This document shows positions 2,371 to 12,737 of a stretch of DNA of 64,000 nucleotides, one piece after another. The notes beneath the pieces were generated by a model, which saw only the letters and a list, made by a program, of their open reading frames with translations, was not told where the DNA came from and searched no databases. The stretch's first letter is position 1, and every line of letters begins with the position of its first letter. Source of the DNA: Oopsacas minuta (lineage: Eukaryota > Animalia > Porifera). The stretch is taken from positions 554,806 through 618,805 of the forward strand of contig JAKMXF010000255.1 of the NCBI GenBank assembly GCA_024704765.1. Direction: 5' to 3'. The translations under genes were made by a program, and so were the position numbers.

Positions 2371-4941
2371 TCAAGGACAAAAGCTTTCCTCTACAATCCA
2401 AGGAAGATTGTACTCATTCAACAAATCAGTGGACATAGTCTTTTGATCATCATCCAGAGGACAAACAACTATACTCACCATATCTGAGAAATCGACTGCA
2501 TCAAGAGTTCCCAAACGGTTGTAATTGACTTCAAGCAGTAGTTTGTTGGGATCTGTTAGAGATTGACACATCATTGCACCCAAACCTATATCGTTATCCA
2601 GCTTAAATGCTGCGCTAGCAATAAGATTTTCTGATATATCTCCTGAAGAATGATCATTTAAAGCAGTGGTACCAAGGTAATTTGCATTTAGGTTGGAAAG
2701 GTCCTGACACCAACCATCACAATACATCAAGTTTCCGAGAACCTTTTGTCCCAGATATGTTGCATAACCTTCAGAGAATGCGAAATTTGGAGTGATAGGA
2801 GAACCATCATGTGGTCCACCCCCTGTTATTACTGCTCCTGTACGGGCGTTAATCAGATGTCCGAATTCATGCAATAACACAGAGTCATCGAATTCGTCTG
2901 GGTCGGTGACATGACCGCCTATGGATATCACTCCTCCACCGAAGTATGACACGGGATAATTGGTACCTTTTGCATACTTTCCATTTTCCCAGTCTGCCTT
3001 ACGTGGATAATCTGTAACCTCTCCACCATACGAGAGGTAGATAGGAAGCATACGAGTTAAGGTAACCATGATATGGAAAGCTCCAGAACTATCAGCTGTA
3101 GTAATAGTAACATCTCTGTTTGCAGTATCTTCCGCACTTGGAATTATTCCTGCTGTAACACGATACACGTGTATATTTACATCTGAATGATCTGTCACTT
3201 CTATCATATTATTTGAGGATAGGAATTCTACATAGACTGTAGAGTCTACATCTTGAGGTTGATATGAAAGAGAGTATACACCTCTTCGTGAATCAGATAC
3301 ATCACGCTCTACCTGAGATGTTCCATATACATTTCCTGCATCATCTACAACTCTGACTATACTACCTAATGGATTGAACCTTGACATGGTGGTCATGTAG
3401 CTCACTGTACCCTTAGCTAAGAATTCATGGCAGTTGACATTTACGACTAATACCTCTCTTCCTGCTCCTGCACCTCCTCCATCTGCTTCATTTGGCAAGA
3501 AAGATCCTTCTACCATTTCTTTTACGTCACAACCTTCTACCAAAATATCAAAATTTATTGTTTCATTGATGGAACACGCTGACCACAAATCCACACGTAT
3601 TGTGTACTGTCCTGAGATTGCTAATTCGTAGTATACATTTTCTGTCTTGATACGATCAATGTTACAACCTGCATTAGAATCAAGATCTAGAAACCCTTCT
3701 TGTGCGGATGAGATTCTGCTAGCATAATATATTTCTTCATTATTCGGATCAACAACATGAAGATCCATATCTACTTCTTTATCCCAAGTTAATCTCACGT
3801 GTAAAGTCCCAGTTTGTGAAGTAGATGTAATAATTGGAATCATTATTACTTCTCCTAATTCTCCTACTATATCCCTAAGGCGAATTAGCATGTCAGTAAC
3901 ATCTCCAGATTCTATGGAACCACTTGGAAGAGTGACCATGAAATTAAGTTGTATTGTCCCATTGTTTGCTTGACGAACTGATCTTCGTGAGGTAGAGGAT
4001 TGAAGAGATGATATAGGAATAATGAAATGCTGACCAAAACCCTCAAATCCCACTAGAATTTCAATTGCTGTAGAATCTTCACTAATTTCAAGAGGAACTT
4101 CTACACTTTGACCTGTAGTTATGGAAACCTCAAAGCTAGGAGGAAGGGTCACATTCAGTGTACCGTTTGTCGTATTGCTAGCTTCAGTTAATGGAAAGCT
4201 TTTCATATCAATAATGCCCTCAGCTATTGTGAATGGATTAGTTACTCCCAACTGGAAGAATATTTCAATCCCAGGAACCATTAGAGTGCGCTGATCAATG
4301 CTATATATTACTAATGGAATTGTATGGAACCTTTCTATTGCAACTATATTTGAAGGAATGGTTATCGTCCCTATCAGAATACTTCCGTTCTGTATTATTG
4401 TGGAATTCATTATTGTAGGTTGTCCGAATATAGAAGTATAGTTCGCTACAAAATGAGACGGATCTCCTGAAACCTCAGCTGTAATGGTTATTTGCATACC
4501 AGGATAGATTTGCAAGGGATAATCAATGGAAATTAGCATCAAACTAGGATCTTGAACAAGGATGATAATTTCACCTACACCATTACTGTTGGTGGTTGAT
4601 TGAGCTTCAACAGTTACAATATGGGTTCCGTCCTCTAAGCCTTGTGTTGGTATTTGTAGGTTAGTGGGAAAGAACTTATATGAGTACCTCTGTACTCCAT
4701 TCAAATACACGAGTACATTTCCCCGTGTGAATATGCCAGTTGGTAAGGATAGTTCTAGTTCAATATAACCGTTGGAGAATGCTTGGTCTGGAGGTAGAGG
4801 GCTATTGATATTGATAGCAAAAGTGCTAGCAGGTCTGAAGATAAACCACGCACCAACTGCGATAGCTACTCCTACAAGCAGTCCAATTACTATTATAGCG
4901 AAACACAGGAACAAAATGAGAATCTTCGTTTTTGTTTCCAT
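2371..4941 (-). CDS. 856-aa intronless type II membrane-anchored zinc metallopeptidase-like protein, copy 1 (TM anchor, Ig-like stalk, YfaP/DUF2135-like domain, gluzincin-like HExxH domain)
   Basis: Hydrophobic N-terminus ILILFLCFAIIVIGLLVGVAIAVGAWFIF. Beta-rich stalk. LTWDKEVDMDLHVVDPNNEEIYY...LDLDSNAGC..D....EN resembles YfaP/DUF2135-type bacterial domains. DPDEFDDSVLLHEFGH (2857-2871) is followed by FSEG, a candidate third zinc ligand. Confidence 0.85.
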   Translation of the reverse strand: METKTKILILFLCFAIIVIGLLVGVAIAVGAWFIFRPASTFAININSPLPPDQAFSNGYIELELSLPTGIFTRGNVLVYLNGVQRYSYKFFPTNLQIPTQGLEDGTHIVTVEAQSTTNSNGVGEIIILVQDPSLMLISIDYPLQIYPGMQITITAEVSGDPSHFVANYTSIFGQPTIMNSTIIQNGSILIGTITIPSNIVAIERFHTIPLVIYSIDQRTLMVPGIEIFFQLGVTNPFTIAEGIIDMKSFPLTEASNTTNGTLNVTLPPSFEVSITTGQSVEVPLEISEDSTAIEILVGFEGFGQHFIIPISSLQSSTSRRSVRQANNGTIQLNFMVTLPSGSIESGDVTDMLIRLRDIVGELGEVIMIPIITSTSQTGTLHVRLTWDKEVDMDLHVVDPNNEEIYYASRISSAQEGFLDLDSNAGCNIDRIKTENVYYELAISGQYTIRVDLWSACSINETINFDILVEGCDVKEMVEGSFLPNEADGGGAGAGREVLVVNVNCHEFLAKGTVSYMTTMSRFNPLGSIVRVVDDAGNVYGTSQVERDVSDSRRGVYSLSYQPQDVDSTVYVEFLSSNNMIEVTDHSDVNIHVYRVTAGIIPSAEDTANRDVTITTADSSGAFHIMVTLTRMLPIYLSYGGEVTDYPRKADWENGKYAKGTNYPVSYFGGGVISIGGHVTDPDEFDDSVLLHEFGHLINARTGAVITGGGPHDGSPITPNFAFSEGYATYLGQKVLGNLMYCDGWCQDLSNLNANYLGTTALNDHSSGDISENLIASAAFKLDNDIGLGAMMCQSLTDPNKLLLEVNYNRLGTLDAVDFSDMVSIVVCPLDDDQKTMSTDLLNEYNLPWIVEESFCP

Positions 4942-5577
4942 AATATGAGATCTCTGATCTGTACAATCGTAAGATTACTATAACTAATAAACAAAGGACA
5001 TGTCTAATTCCCAGGACGTGACAAAACATCATGCGACTATCCGGAAAATTCTGACACCTCGACTACGAGATGAACTCGTAAATATATGTGGGTAGGTAAT
5101 TTCTTGGACAAGAACTTTCCGGGACGGTTATGTCAATTCTCGGGAAATAGACTACATGTGTCATAAAAGGATACTCGTAAATCGAATCAAGATTTCCCAG
5201 TTATTTTATTGCAATGCTTACGCTCCACGCTACGGCGGTTTTAGCTACGTACCCATAGAAAAATTGGTAAGTAATTGATAAGTGAATTGATAAGTATATA
5301 AGAATCAAGATGTTATATATATATATATACATTTGACCACACATTGTGTTAAATAACAAAGTCTAGTATTAGTTCCAGGCATAACTACGTGTATGTGAGG
5401 CTTATTCGCCAATAAAATTCTTCTAGACTATGAATAAACGGAAGTCCATTTATTAGATAACGAGCCTTTGGCTCGTCGTTTCGCGATGAACTCGGCGCAT
5501 TGCACCTCGAGGTATCCATTATTCTCAAATTGACGACCCCTTTGAGTATTATAATTTCGATATAAGTAGAACATTTG

Positions 5578-5578
<1 letters not shown>

Positions 5579-5626
<48 letters not shown>
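5579..5626 (+). repeat. (GTT)n microsatellite, about 16 units
   Basis: Directly visible perfect trinucleotide run. Confidence 0.98.
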
Positions 5627-5919
5627 AGTGTTGGCGGTGGCGCCGCCGCTGGTATTATTGCCGCCTCAACATATATTTTGAGATTTGGCCAAATTTGTTT
5701 ACTTTATATACATAAAAACAACAATAAATTTACATAAGAGATCTTGAAAATGCGAAATTCTAGTTCAAGGTACTGTGGTACCCTTGGGTAGCCGTTTTGA
5801 GCAAGCCTGTCTGTTATTTTGAGATTTGGATAATTTGTTTACAATAAGTCAAAGACTCAAAGTTAATTTATATTATAGTGTATTCTGAATGTTATACAGA
5901 AAATCTAAGTATTAAATTT

Positions 5920-6130
5920 GAATTGTTGTTTGTCTGTTTGTTTGTTTTTGTTTGTCCTTTTTCAAGGAAAAGATTTACGGCATGCAATTTGAATTTGTCT
6001 CACAATTATGGCATTTACCATGTTTATCAAAGGAAGTAAATAGAATTCAATAAATCTTCATTGAATATATACAACTTGCTAAATGCAATTTTCACTCTTT
6101 TGGATTAATCTTATGTAAATTTACAATACA
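5920..6130 (+). repeat. Dispersed repeat family A copy ((GTTT)n-headed, Helentron/DINE-1-like)
   Basis: ttgtttgtctgtttg...tcaaggaaaagatttacggcatgcaattt...tttatcaaaggaagtaaatagaattcaataaa matches 13050-13250 and 43385-43560. Confidence 0.8.
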
Positions 6131-6302
6131 ATTACATCATCTCCCATGTCCCGTATAATACTATGAGCAAGCTTTGCTTGCGACGTAAGGCAATCGGAAT
6201 GATATCTTCACAAAAATTCTATTGTGTTTCAATAGTATTATCGATATTGGTAATTCTTGCATACATGTTTAATCATTGAAATTCTATCACATATTTGAAA
6301 TA

Positions 6303-8940
6303 ATGCCAAATAGATGTTGTTCAGCACCTGGGTACAGGACCTTAAAAATATACATGCGTGTCTGAAACACTTCCATGTTGAAGTTGTGGAAACGTGCTTT
6401 TCTATTCCTCAACCCGATGGAACCAAGTTAGAAGTTAATCGTACCATGTCTAGACTTCACCGAGATGCTGTTCCTAAGCTCCTACCAGGTTGTCCGAGTT
6501 ATCGCTCTATTTTAACTAAGCCACAAACTCGTTTAGATCTTTCTACTAAAGAACGGGATCAGTTGAATGTTGCGATCACTTAGAGCTTGAAACAACAACT
6601 AATAGATAAAAAGATGTTTAAACTTTAAAGTATCTACATTCTGTGAGTTGAATTCAAAAGTGAATAGTTTAACTCTCTCTCAGGGGAGTGTATAATCATA
6701 ATTATAATCATACACGATGCGACCAAACTGTTCCGTTTGGCAATTTTGAAATCTCAAATCGGTGGACGGTGTTTATAAGATAACAAGTTCACTGCAATAC
6801 AATTTATACTTTGATAATTGGAAAACATCTTACGTCATGGGTGCTCAAACTTTTATATCTACGGTCCACTTTACAAATTAGGCTCCCCCTATGGGCCACA
6901 AATCATAGATCGTCTCTGGCTTTAGTTTAATCAATTTTAAAGCTATATTATTGACATCATATTGCATTAACAATGGATTCTACTTGTAAATTCAGGTTAT
7001 TGACTTAAATTATGATCTTATAAATGGATTCGAATCATTTGATGTCTCTCTTGAATTCAACTTGTTTTCTAGCAAGTGGACAATAGTACTAAACGATTGA
7101 AGTACGTCAATCTACTGTATATGTATGAATAATGAAAACAAGCGAATTATCCGCGGGCGAGAGCGAATGGTCTCGCGGGAAACATGTGGACACCGTTTGA
7201 GCACCCTTGTCTTACGTCATAAGAACCATCACAGCTACAATATTACAACTATCATAGTAGTGCTGAAGTATCAACTTATTTCCCCAGCATTTTATCATTA
7301 TCTACAACCATTGGCTTGGAAATTGAATTTCGTATTTTATAAACTGATCTACTGTTATTCTTGATTTCAATGTTGTACATAATCTGAAGACTATACGTAA
7401 TACCTGGTTGAATCATAAAGATTGCAGGGCAAGCTTTAGTTAGCCTAACTTTGAAGATATCCGAATTTTATATGAAGCTGATCAACACTCAATAGTTAAG
7501 TTAGCTCCTCGGTTAACAGCCAAATCATGCTGGCCTTCCAACTTGGAACGTCAGAATGTAATTTTTGGCATTGAAAGTTTTTGAGGATTCTACCCATTCT
7601 GCACTCAAGGTTCAGTATCTTACATCTCCTAACCACCATTCTTGTCATCACACAAGCGAATTCATTCGTGTGATTTGTGACATCTGGAAGATGTTTATAT
7701 TAATACTCCATCCAAAGCTATTGGATTAAATAATGAAGCGTGCCGTCCATTTGTCCAAACGATTCCAGATTCAGTTATCTATCACGAGTTGTTGTTTGGC
7801 TTGAAAGATGGCAAGAGTTACCTCGCAATACTGGGAAACTTACTACTGAGACTTTTAAAGCTTTCACAAGTTTAGCGTTAACTTCAATATTAAACCATGG
7901 CGTAGCCAGGGGGTGGCTTTGTAGGCTAAAGCCACACCGAAAATTCTGATGTTAACATACTATGGAAGAATTGTTAATTACTACTATTACTGAAACACAT
8001 TAAGAATTAACAAATATATTACTATTTTACGTCGTAGGTATTAGTACATTTCTATATCAAATTGTTTGAATGAAACAGTTGTCAATGAAAAGCTTTTGGG
8101 GGCACAGCTAGCTCATTAGTTGTTAATTCTACTCAGGGTCGTTATGAAGATGGCAATATTAGTTCCAGTGACTTTGATACGAATCTAGACCCCATACATA
8201 ACGACTTACAATTTCCAACTCAGATTATTATTGTCAAATTAATCGTTTTCTAATAATTTAGATATCCGTCTAAACGAAAAATGATTCTTTAGTTATTACA
8301 TTTTAAAACTCAGCCACACCAAATAATTAGCCCTAGCTACGCCACTGAAACCATCTTACACAGAACTGTAACTATTCATATTTACTCGCTTCTTTTTGTA
8401 AATGATCCCTGGAGAATCATTTTAGAATTTCAGAATGATGGCTGGTGCTCAATATCATATTACCTTCTGTCAGATCCTCGAAAGCGAGCGGCGCTTAAAG
8501 TTATTTAGTGTTATCCTAAAAGTTGGTGCAATGCATCATTTATCTCTTAAAGAATTTATTGATTCCTTTTCAACTTCAACAGAACTTGCTAATACTCTTA
8601 ACACGGAACATTTTCTATCATCTAGGTGCTAGAATATTCTGTAATTAAAGTTCCACTTCAACTCAACCAACACTTGTGTTTATAGCTGGATATACAGTTT
8701 ATGGTTACTTCAAGAATTCTACCTGTTGTCAATATTGTTTATCTTTCCCTACAGGAAACAAAGAAGTGGAAATAGAAGCATCACCAGAATCAATCTACAA
8801 GCTGTTACAAGTTATGGATCGTAGTGCATTGAAATGGCCATCTGGTATTGTTATCAATGTCCTAGTTTGCTTGCGGAAAATTTTCACTTCGATGGAACAA
8901 CAGGATTTATGGAATGTTGTATTGAATTATGATATCTCAC
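6303..8940 (+). mobile_element. Decayed P-element/THAP9-like DNA transposon (transposase pseudogene)
   Basis: MPNRCCSAPG(Y)R at 6303 and C-x-x-HF...LHRDAVP are THAP-domain pieces, with a deletion and frameshift between them. Other fragments: LAPRLTAKSCWPSNLERQNV (~7500), PNDSRFSYL..VVWLERW, LTTETFKAF, and DP(L)E..F.EFRMMAGAQYHITFCQILESERRLK (~8400-8510). Many stops and frameshifts. Confidence 0.8.
7899..8347. mobile_element. hAT-like MITE inserted into the P-element transposase
   Basis: TIRs ggcgtagccaggg and ccctagctacgcc(actg), flanked by the direct repeat aaaccat on both sides. Removing the element rejoins ...SILNH to LTQNCNYSYLL. Confidence 0.8.
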
Positions 8941-8942
8941 TA

Positions 8943-9231
8943 CAGTGTACCCTCGATTATCCGACACCTGGAAGAGGATTTAGTTTGTGAAATTGTTCAA
9001 ATTTCATGTCTAAAGGGAGCTATAGCATACTTTAGCACTAGGTTTTCGGATGATGTTGCATTTACGCCCATATTGGTATAAATATACTGTCAAATATTCA
9101 AATTACAAAATCTTCATTTTCATATATACCCAAACAGTGAATTTCATATAGGAAAATACACTATTTCAGTTATCCGAACAGCAAACTTGAAAGTGTATGA
9201 CGAAGGTGTTCCGATAACCGAGGGTGTACTG
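8943..9231. mobile_element. Tc1/pogo-type MITE with TA target duplication
   Basis: ta|cagtgtaccctcgattatccga ... tccgataaccgagggtgtactg|ta. Confidence 0.75.
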
Positions 9232-9880
9232 TACTAAAGTGTTGCATATGCTATACCTATCGACTAGCAATCATTCTTTGCCTGTGTTCACTATCTTGAC
9301 AACCCAACTATTTGTCCCCTATTATACATAATCATGTTTTATCCCTCAATTACCATGTCTAACCGTGGAAACGAAATCTATAGCATCATTTTGAATTATT
9401 AGCCAAAACGTGCGAAAATATGATTTATCATATAATACATTATTATATCTACATATGAGACACCTCAACAACTAATAGAATTCCAGGATACATTCAATAT
9501 AAACGCATTACAGTGACAATGTAATTACACATCCTGTAGAACTAATAGAAATGGCGTGAATAGTACATCGTGAAAAACGTCCAATCTAATTGGCCTTAAT
9601 TTAGCCGCCAAAAAGGTGTGAAAACAATCACTTAACAAAGTTCATACCCGAGGTGCACATATACACCCAAAATGTACTCACGTGCCAATTTTCATGTAAA
9701 TGGGTCTGTTAGATTTCGCAAGACGGACGAACGTCATACATCGTCCATGCCAATAGGGCACAAAAAATATAGAATTGTACGTTCAAATATAGATAAAAAT
9801 CTGTCGAGGGAGTCCGAGAGGACTATTGTCCTGGGGCCAGATTATACCCGGGGTTAAACTGGGTGGGGAGGTTAATATAA

Positions 9881-9966
9881 GCTGTTACACCGGCACACGT
9901 GATAAGATTTCATTGAGTCGGGGTGCTGACTCATTGAAATAATATCATGAGTACCGGTGTAACAGC
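9881..9966. repeat. Imperfect 86-bp palindrome
   Basis: gctgttacaccgg...ttcattgagtc / gactcattgaa...ccggtgtaacagc. Confidence 0.75.
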
Positions 9967-10149
9967 ATCGACTTCTTAATATGAAAACGAATATAAATTA
10001 TTTTTGTATTTTCAAGACTCAGGAAAATGAAAATATACACACGCCTCACAGCAAAGAGTAGATAGAAATAACACACGATAGAAATGAGTAAATACCCTAA
10101 CAAGTAACTAAGATAGAATACATGAGTTATTACAGAATGAGTATATAAA

Positions 10150-12737
10150 TCAAGCACAAAAGCCTGCCTCTACAATCCAAGGAAGATTGTACTCATTCAA
10201 CAAATCAGTGGACATAGTCTTTTGATCATCATCCAGAGGACAAACAACTATACTCACCATATCTGAGAAATCGACTGCGTCAAGAGTTCCCAAACGGTTG
10301 TAATTGACTTCAAGCAGTAGTTTGTTGGGATCTGTTAGAGATTGACACATCATTGCACCCAAACCTATATCGTTATCCAGCTTAAATGCTGCGCTAGCAA
10401 TAAGATTTTCTGATATATCTCCTGAAGAATGATCATTTAAAGCAGTGGTACCAAGGTAATTTGCATTTAGGTTGGAAAGGTCCTGACACCAACCATCACA
10501 ATACATCAAGTTTCCGAGAACCTTTTGTCCCAGATATGTTGCATAACCTTCAGAGAATGCGAAATTTGGAGTGATAGGAGAACCATCATGTGGTCCACCC
10601 CTGTTATTACTGCTCCTGTACGGGCGTTAATCAGATGTCCGAATTCATGCAATAACACAGAGTCATCGAATTCGTCTGGGTCGGTGACATGACCGCCTAT
10701 GGATATCACTCCTCCACTGAAGTATGACACGGGATAATTGGTACCTTTTGCATACTTTCCATTTTCCCAGTCTGCCTTACGTGGATAATCTGTAACCTCT
10801 CCACCATACGAGAGGTAGATAGGAAGCATACGAGTTAAGGTAACCATGATATGGAAAGCTCCAGAACCATCAGCTGTAGTAATAGTAACATCTCTGTTTG
10901 CAGTATCTTCCGCACTTGGAATTATTCCTGCTGTAACACGATACACGTGTATATTTACATCTGAATGATCTGTCACTTCTATCATATTATTTGAGGATAG
11001 GAATTCTACATAGACTGTAGAGTCTACATCTTGAGGTTGATATGAAAGAGAGTATACACCTCTTCGTGAATCAGATACATCACGCTCTACCTGAGATGTT
11101 CCATATACATTTCCTGCATCATCTACAACTCTGACTATACTACCTAATGGATTGAACCTTGACATGGTGGTCATGTAACTCACTGTACCCTTAGCTAAGA
11201 ATCCATTGCAGGTGACATTTACGACTAATACCTCTCTTCCTGCTCCTGCACCTCCTCCATTTGCTTCACTTGGCAAGAATGATCCTTCTACCATTTGGTT
11301 TACGCCACAACCTTCTACCAAAACATCAAAATTTATTGTTTCAGTGATGGAACACGCTGACCACAAATCCACACGTATTATGTACTGTCCTGAGATTGCT
11401 AATTCGTAGTATACATTTTCTGTCTTGATACGATCAATGTTACAACCGGCATTAGAATCAAGATCTAGAAACCCTTCTTGTGCGGATGAGCTTAGATCAC
11501 CGAAATATATTTCTTCATTATTCGGATCGACAACATGAAGATCCATATCTACTTCCTGATCCCAAGTTAATCTAATGTGAAAAGTTCCCATTTCTGATTT
11601 CGAAGTAATAGTTGTGATCGTCTGAACTGGTCCTAATTCCCCTACCATATTTCTCAGACGGATCAACATTTCTATTTGTTCACCATTGCTAACAGATCCA
11701 GTAGGGAGAGTGACCATAAATGATAATGTTTGGGTACTAGCAGGATTTGCTTGACGAATTGATCTACGTCTTTGTGTATTTTGTAGAGAAGATATAGGAA
11801 TAATGAAATGCTGACCAAAACCCTCAAATCCCACTAGAATTTCAATTGCTGTAGAATCTTCACTAATTTCAAGAGGAACTTCTACACTTTGACCTGTAGT
11901 TATGGAAACCTCAAAACTAGGAGGAAGGGTCGCATCTAGTGTACCGTTTGTCGTATTGCTAGCTTCAGTTAATGGAAAGCTTTCCATATCAATAATGCCC
12001 TCAGCTATTGTGAATGGATTAGTTACTCCCAACTGGAAGAATATTTCAATCCCAGGAACCATTAGAGTGCGCTGATCAATGCTATATATTACTAATGGAA
12101 TTGTATGGAACCTTTCTACTGCAACTATATTTGAAGGAATGGTTATCGTCCCTATCAGAATACTTCCGTTCTGTATTATTGTGGAAGTCATTATTGTAGG
12201 TTGTCCGAATATAGAAGTATAGTTCGCTACAAAATGAGACGGATCTCCTGAAACCTCAGCTGTAATGGTTATTTGCATACCAGGATAGATTTGCAAGGGA
12301 TAATCAATGGAAATTAGCATCAAACTAGGATCTTGAACAAGGATGGTAATTTCACCTACACCATTACTGTTGGTGGTTGATTTAGCTTCAACAGTTACAA
12401 TATGGGTTCCGTCCTCTAAGCCTTGTGTTGGTATTTGTAGGTTAGTGGGAAAGAACTTATATGAGTACTTCTGTACTCCATTCAAATACACGAGTACATT
12501 TCCCCGTGTGAATATGCCAGTTGGTAAGGATAGTTCTAGTTCAATGAAACCGTTGGAAAATGCTTCATCTGATGGTATAGTGCTGTCTATGGAGATGATG
12601 AAATTCGATTGTTGACTTGTGGATAACTGGCGCGTTCCAAACCATACGCCAATGCCTATAGTTGCTACTAGGAGTAATCCAATGACTAGGAATACCAGAC
12701 AAAGTAAGAATATCAGGACTGTCTTCTTTGGATCCAT
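10150..12737 (-). pseudogene. Metallopeptidase copy 2 (paralog of 2371-4941), split by a 1-nt deletion; pseudogene or assembly error
   Basis: ORFs 10506-12737 and 10150-10509 together match copy 1 end to end. The C run at 10598-10601 has 4 C against 5 C at 2819-2823 in copy 1. Confidence 0.8.

Follow-up and report, generated by a model that had tools for sequence, protein, structure and literature searches.

The window considered here, the whole 64,000-nucleotide stretch of the glass sponge (hexactinellid) Oopsacas minuta (contig JAKMXF010000255.1, positions 554,806 to 618,805), carries two tandem copies of a gene for a predicted membrane-anchored metalloprotease, and the subject of this report is a short arginine motif encoded by both copies, RRSVR in copy 1 and RRRSIR in copy 2, which we read as a probable furin-type proprotein-convertase site. 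Copy 1 (2371..4941, minus strand, as are all gene features given below) is an intact intronless open reading frame (ORF) of 856 amino acids, identical to protein P0001. From the N-terminus it has a transmembrane (TM) anchor, Ig-like beta-sandwiches, a YfaP-like beta domain, another beta-sandwich and, at the C-terminus, a metalloprotease domain with HEFGH. The anchor is a hydrophobic stretch (residues 3-34, 4840..4935) which is helical in the AlphaFold2 model and which we read as a type II signal anchor. The motif is held by an Ig/FN3-like beta-sandwich (residues 264-380, 3802..4152), which is followed by the YfaP-like domain (residues ~380-481, 3499..3804), the part best conserved with bacteria and marked by the motif DLDLHVVDP. 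The zinc-binding motif HEFGH (residues 691-695, 2857..2871) has a conserved SEGYA Glu about 29 residues downstream of it.

In copy 1 the motif (R319-R323, 3973..3987) puts arginine at P5 (R319), P4 (R320) and P1 (R323) of the predicted site, with the predicted scissile bond between R323 (3973-3975) and Q324 (3970-3972). The equivalent predicted site of copy 2 is RRRSIR (11754..11771), and in both copies QAN follows directly. The first-pass annotation had read both segments at these coordinates and had described them as a motif kept while the flanking residues differ; the codons bear out both statements, as the four codons before R319 and those after N326 are unrelated between the copies, while R319-N326 has seven of eight residues the same. 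Two blocks of the genes diverge between the copies, and the motif marks the 5' edge of the second; given the roughly 60% identity of this block such agreement has p ~0.1, so that retention between the two window copies, taken alone, would be weak evidence. R-x-x-R is the minimal pattern recognized by furin, and its P4 and P1 arginines are present as RSVR in copy 1 and RSIR in copy 2. The optimal consensus R-x-K/R-R is not found in either, as P2 in these proteins is V, I or T, and only the homologue P0027 has RGRR. No other R-x-x-R occurs in the 856 residues of copy 1, where 0.79 would be expected from the Arg content. A polymorphism was also noticed at P2 of copy 2: an A>G change at 11758, in a contig of one public run, turns I327 into T and RRRSIR into RRRSTR, which is the consensus of the family and leaves R-x-x-R intact.

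Protein searches returned, besides the O. minuta entries LOD99_3361 and LOD99_7092, some 30 more close homologues with 50-85% identity, which include a Vazella pourtalesii transcript (EukProt, complete ORF) and genes of at least three ENA assemblies other than that of O. minuta. The ENA homologues lie on long contigs, each as a single ORF with eukaryotic neighbours (fn3, Ras, C2H2 zinc finger). Three of them (P0010, P0011 and P0029) share one 925-kb contig of another sponge-like assembly (L009, ENA ERZ25072730), which thus also holds several copies of the family. When 28 sponge members were scored for the loop motif, R-x-x-R was found within this loop in 20 of them, the V. pourtalesii transcript and genes of three or more of the other assemblies included; related species do keep the motif. 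In the sponge alignment arginine occupies columns 319, 320 and 323 in 79%, 86% and 75% of members and serine column 321 in 75%, while at the other loop columns the commonest residue averages about 48%. The strand HFIIPI and the strand preceding LPxGS are nearly invariant, and the loop between them varies in both length and sequence. Where P5 is lost, in P0011 (PRSTR) and P0020 (LRPIR), P4 and P1 are kept, which fits the minimal furin pattern; in P0027 the RGRR stands at a shifted position. The arginine codons differ synonymously between species (AGA, CGG, CGA and CGT at P4), and this variation, together with the varying flanks, points to constraint at the level of the protein. In the maximum-likelihood tree, for which two bacterial sequences served as the root, all major sponge clades contain the motif, and it is therefore ancestral in the sponge family. 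The claim of the first-pass annotation that the following QAN is retained holds for the two copies; beyond close relatives Q at P1' alone is kept (57%). We have little doubt, on this record, that the motif is functional.

The homologues outside sponges are all bacterial, at 26-30% identity, and include a Rugamonas sp. 'YfaP family protein' (P0032), a protein from a metagenome-assembled genome (MAG) of Deltaproteobacteria and one from an Acidobacteriota MAG; at least 308 bacterial loci encode relatives, many of them in Polyangia/Myxococcota. By these searches the family occurs among eukaryotes in glass sponges only. The Deltaproteobacteria MAG protein P0033 aligns from residue 76 to residue 781, so the whole domain order is older than the sponge family, and the bacterial YfaP/DUF2135-like lipoproteins with a C-terminal HExxH, such as P0032 of Rugamonas sp. 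and MBL8786364.1 of a Deltaproteobacteria MAG (P0045), share with the sponge proteins the Ig-like, YfaP-like, beta-sandwich and HEFGH domains in like order and at the same 26-30% identity. What separates the two groups is the N-terminus and the loop. Bacterial members begin with lipoprotein-type signal peptides (LLGGC, LLSGC), whereas all sponge members have a long hydrophobic helix, the TM anchor, in their place. Ten bacterial proteins, P0033 and nine others spanning the point, could be aligned across the loop position, and all ten have after the HFIIPI equivalent a short neutral or acidic turn (e.g. PDVQSPAFPTF, DQTENKT), 5-15 residues shorter than the sponge loop and with no basic cluster. 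The motif is thus missing from the bacterial homologues, and the view that a eukaryote had added it to a bacterial-type enzyme gains by this: it behaves as a selected sponge-specific feature, kept in relatives and without bacterial counterpart. We lean towards the interpretation that the convertase site arose as a loop insertion after a gene for a bacterial lipoprotein-type metalloprotease had settled in glass sponges.

The position of the motif within the fold was examined with structure models. The AlphaFold2 model of copy 1, built from the family alignment, has a mean predicted local distance difference test score (pLDDT) of 79 and a predicted template modelling score (pTM) of 0.74, and consists of the helix 3-34, a chain of beta-sandwich domains and a C-terminal helical protease domain. 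The motif segment, residues 316-326 (3964..3996), is a surface loop which is an insertion relative to the bacterial homologues and is among the few stretches of the full-length model below 50 pLDDT; it is thus probably an exposed flexible loop. Folded alone, residues 264-380 gave one compact seven-strand domain (pTM 0.71) with low confidence at 317-326 only, four strands lying before the loop and three after it, and with 10-residue block means of pLDDT mostly at 85-92 in the flanking strands. In a structure search with this model, made independently of Foldseek, single fn3, PKD, Ig-like, pilus-chaperone and macroglobulin-type domains aligned across its residues 1-117, with 88-101 residues aligned and Z of 7-8.4. 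In these models, then, the site is a loop inside one Ig/FN3-like domain and not an inter-domain linker, and the earlier description of a linker between an N-terminal stalk and the enzymatic half has to be replaced by that of a loop joining strand 4 to strand 5 within a single beta-sandwich.

The TM helix of copy 1 is about 28-32 residues long, and eight N-x-S/T sequons and all nine non-TM cysteines come after it, and the bacterial relatives are exported lipoproteins; these features are consistent with type II topology in which the large C-terminal bulk would be lumenal. Two other readings of the arginines, a PKA-type RRxS/T phosphosite and an RXR signal for retention in the endoplasmic reticulum (ER), were rejected, the segment being predicted lumenal. 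The sole cysteine N-terminal to the site is C13, which lies inside the TM helix, and hence no disulfide is expected across the site. As regards the enzyme, 25 of the 28 full or near-full sponge members carry HEFGH, as do the bacterial proteins P0031, P0032 and P0034, and E724, the Glu of SEGYA, is nearly invariant in the family, so that HExxH and the downstream Glu occur together as in gluzincin-like zinc metalloproteases. A few members have lost HExxH and are still full-length, namely sponge P0023 (YLIAY) and P0024 (QAFGQ) and bacterial P0033 (KEFFK), and judged from their sequences these are probable pseudo-proteases, in sponges and bacteria alike. Scanned against Pfam and NCBIfam, the sponge proteins and domains gave nothing above threshold, and a PDB sequence search with the single sequence or the family profile gave nothing meaningful (top BamC, E = 0.1), so that no MEROPS family was assignable from Pfam, NCBIfam or PDB sequence matches. 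Foldseek with the full-length model returned generic multi-Ig arrays only and did not place the protease domain, and the ESM Atlas returned low-score bacterial leads only. The label 'YfaP-like' given in the first-pass annotation is not supported, having no basis beyond the UniRef name of one bacterial homologue (P0032) and a sub-threshold DUF2135 match: the gathering score of PF09906 (DUF2135) is not reached, the sponge proteins having no match and bacterial P0033 scoring 14.6 bits against a cut-off of 22.

The O. minuta genome was found to contain one clear P-domain match, within an intronless ORF of 946 codons (locus L007, 2518-5358; G000:C297). The encoded protein is composed of an S8 pro-domain, an S8 catalytic domain, a P domain, Cys-rich furin-like repeats and a C-terminal TM segment, and matches furin 1p8j with E = 7.7e-156. 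Its catalytic residues are D163, H204 and S376, with N304 for the oxyanion hole, and the S1/S4 residues D258, D306, E236, D264 and Y308 of furin are conserved as D267, D314, E245, D273 and Y316. Furin D191, of the S2 subsite, is replaced by Thr (T201). A relaxed P2 preference arising from this Thr was considered and set aside, as P2 is basic both in the sites of the enzyme's prodomain and in those of the TGF-beta ligands. The canonical autocleavage sites of the prodomain are RSRR and RHKR, and two O. minuta TGF-beta-family ligands (L093 and L095; G000:C142 and C111) carry RNRR and RRSRR just before the mature cystine-knot domain. The convertase with its own sites and the TGF-beta sites together make up a classical convertase-substrate system in O. 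minuta, with sites much like RRSxR. The furin-type reading of the motif thus finds in the same genome a membrane-bound furin-like enzyme, which would share a compartment with the metalloprotease. Furin and PC7 homologues with TM domains are also described in the demosponge Amphimedon (PMC6850559).

Furthermore, the convertase (residues 121-590) was modelled in complex with the motif-bearing domain (residues 264-380), along with three controls. The complex scored 0.76 while the best of the controls scored 0.04, and a mark of 0.76 is attained by 51 of 78 complexes of solved structure and by 2 of 108 mismatched pairs. Between runs the contacts agree to at least 92%, the pLDDT of the partner is at least 65, and the confident interface on the substrate side is confined to residues 318-326. 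The contacts of least error set R323 against the catalytic S376, the oxyanion-hole N304 and residues 262-264; V322 stands against D163, H204 and L236, and R320 against residues 263-265 and V240. This modelled docking in the canonical subtilase register, with R323 at P1 and R320 at P4, supports compatibility of loop and enzyme, which is not the same as cleavage.

Turning to the second copy and its surroundings, the first 743 codons of copy 2 (10506..12737) are 87% identical to copy 1 over 713 residues, and its C-terminal part lies in another reading frame (10150..10509). The frame breaks after G713 (AVITG; aligned to copy 1 residue 707) at a homopolymer (10598..10601, CCCC on the plus strand and GGGG on the minus strand) where copy 1 has one base more, five G against four; the 149 codons past the frameshift are 98% identical to copy 1 (residues 707-855) in the different frame. 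The public model of copy 2, LOD99_3361 (P0002, 840 amino acids), bridges the frameshift with an intron and thereby deletes the SEGYA zinc-ligand region, and over this region the model is probably wrong. The 5-G form alone is present in collapsed contigs of four public runs, of which no assignment to copy 2 is possible. The public-run contigs around the homopolymer, for which the library type is not given, mix letters of both copies, and the frameshift may be either genuine or an assembly error. Run depth was not taken as a sign of RNA, since the size quoted for a run refers to its set of contigs and a contig of 107 kb occurs in one of them. The identity of the two copies is a mosaic: codons 61-315 and ~420-707 are 97-100% identical, while codons 1-60 and ~315-390 are divergent blocks of about 60% nucleotide identity with many synonymous differences, a pattern which suggests gene conversion or recombination with other paralogues. 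Both the TM/N-terminal region and the loop region of the tandem copies (window 2371-12737) fall in the divergent blocks. The window as a whole is AT-rich (about 35% G+C) with sparse ORFs, and tRNA and Rfam scans of it gave no match; the O. minuta genome itself has been published (PMC10280926).

Taken together, we consider it rather probable that RRS(V/I/T)R is a proprotein-convertase site of furin type cut after R323. The protein would be inserted into the ER membrane in type II orientation, most of it facing the lumen, and the furin-like convertase, itself membrane-bound, would bind the flexible loop in the late secretory pathway, R320 entering S4 and R323 entering S1. Cleavage after R323 would then yield a two-chain protein, because the loop connects the fourth and fifth strands of one beta-sandwich and is not bridged by a disulfide: an anchored N-terminal fragment of about 323 residues would stay non-covalently interlocked with a C-terminal fragment bearing the YfaP-like and HEFGH domains, and release of the latter, if any, would depend on something more, for instance force, unfolding or another cut. 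Several observations weigh against this. Cleavage at R323 remains a prediction, and the site is a minimal one, with T, V or I rather than K/R at P2, while the bona fide O. minuta substrates use R-x-R-R. The pass of the complex model may reflect memory of solved furin-peptide complexes, and that test has no calibration for disordered loops. On a separate contig lies a third O. minuta paralogue, 61% identical, which reads ...KRNSNSRRASDK... here, with RR kept and the P1 Arg gone; in the clade of this paralogue (SRRAS[D/E]K, SRRTFEK) and in P0025 (RRSEDD) the P1 Arg has been secondarily lost, and P0013, P0015 and P0018 have loop deletions and lack part or all of the loop, from which it follows that the site is dispensable for some members. 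P0023 and P0024, without catalytic residues, still keep the motif, so its role is not simply activation of the protease. The expression record consists of the V. pourtalesii transcript of an orthologue only.

Three other explanations were weighed. The same evidence that points to cleavage would serve equally a shedding switch, in which the convertase cut directly frees a soluble fragment with the YfaP-like and metalloprotease domains, and the lack of a disulfide to hold the fragments (C13 being in the TM helix) would favour it. But with four strands before the loop and three after, with the 117-residue piece folding singly (pTM 0.71) and with single fn3, PKD and Ig-like domains aligning over the whole of it, the cut halves would be expected to remain interlocked, their strands still paired in sheets, like those of Notch S1 or of SEA domains; we regard direct shedding as improbable, and the earlier proposal of a soluble protease released from its anchor does not follow from an intra-sandwich cut, which leaves the chains interlocked. 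Somewhat less improbable, though still unlikely, is that the loop is functional as a basic element other than a convertase site, either as a patch for an anionic partner (glycosaminoglycan, silica or protein) or as a target of another protease (a trypsin-like one, or the family's own metalloprotease, with RR as a dibasic register). RR is present in 23 of 28 members, including the clade without the P1 Arg, the motif persists in catalytically dead members, and the non-basic P2 is unlike that of the classic O. minuta substrates. Against this, P0011 and P0020, in which RR is lost, have precisely P4 and P1 left, a better match to R-x-x-R than to a general basic patch, a disordered loop with three arginines would make a weak polyanion site, and the complex model places the loop in canonical docking register.

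That the motif has no function at all, and owes its retention to chance or to recent conversion between the tandem paralogues, is very hard to credit. Within the window alone it could be entertained, as seven identical residues of eight in a block of ~60% identity carry p ~0.1 and the mosaic identity of the copies is conversion-like. The motif recurs, however, in 20 of 28 homologues of several species over branch lengths which sum to well over one change per site, the flanks and the arginine codons vary, and the V. pourtalesii transcript and the three separate assemblies count against conversion within a single species. Thus the reading of a convertase site cut after R323, with the two chains held together, is the one we carry forward. 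If that cleavage is true, the family would offer a clear and datable case of a horizontally acquired bacterial enzyme wired into the secretory-pathway regulation of an animal, in which a TM anchor replaced the lipoprotein signal and an existing domain took up a convertase loop, which was kept through the whole radiation of a multi-copy family. It would also name a testable substrate for a sponge furin-like convertase, for which a limited literature search found no earlier-known substrate, and the intra-sandwich site corrects the simple shedding picture by predicting a tethered two-chain form. Neither Pfam nor NCBIfam nor the PDB gave the family an assignment, and we found no published description of it in literature searches on the family, on YfaP/DUF2135 and on horizontal gene transfer in Hexactinellida.

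Comparison with known systems places these proteins beside three kinds of convertase substrate. ADAMs, MT-MMPs and the astacin/BMP1 proteases are activated by convertases at R-x-K/R-R between prodomain and catalytic domain. Like them, the sponge protein is a membrane or secreted zinc metalloprotease with furin processing, here predicted, in the secretory pathway; unlike them, its site lies about 370 residues upstream of HEFGH, inside an Ig-like domain instead of at the edge of a prodomain, the catalytically dead sponge paralogues keep the site, and the bacterial homologues have the N-terminal domains without it. In integrin alpha chains furin cuts in a loop of the Calf-2 beta-sandwich, and the likeness here is closer, as a convertase site lies in a beta-sandwich loop and heavy and light chains stay together, but the integrin chains are disulfide-linked while no cysteine is available on the sponge N-terminal fragment. 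In Notch the S1 cut is made by furin in the heterodimerisation domain. The sponge protein resembles this in having an R-x-x-R-type site in an exposed loop of a folded extracellular domain of a membrane protein, and in the predicted outcome of two chains held non-covalently and released by a later event. It differs in that the domain is an Ig/FN3-like sandwich, the topology is type II against type I for Notch, the cargo is a bacterial-type metalloprotease and the cleavage is predicted only. We put forward, tentatively and as a proposal that in its full form is still doubtful, that a bacterial lipoprotein metalloprotease acquired by the glass-sponge lineage gained a signal anchor and, inside an Ig-like domain, an inserted convertase loop of about 7-15 residues, and gave rise to a family of nicked, non-covalently tethered ectoenzymes or pseudo-enzymes, the C-terminal part of which is freed only by a second trigger such as force or unfolding; the family would be an analogue, evolved independently on a horizontally acquired scaffold, of the Notch S1, SEA and GAIN-type receptors that are cleaved but held.

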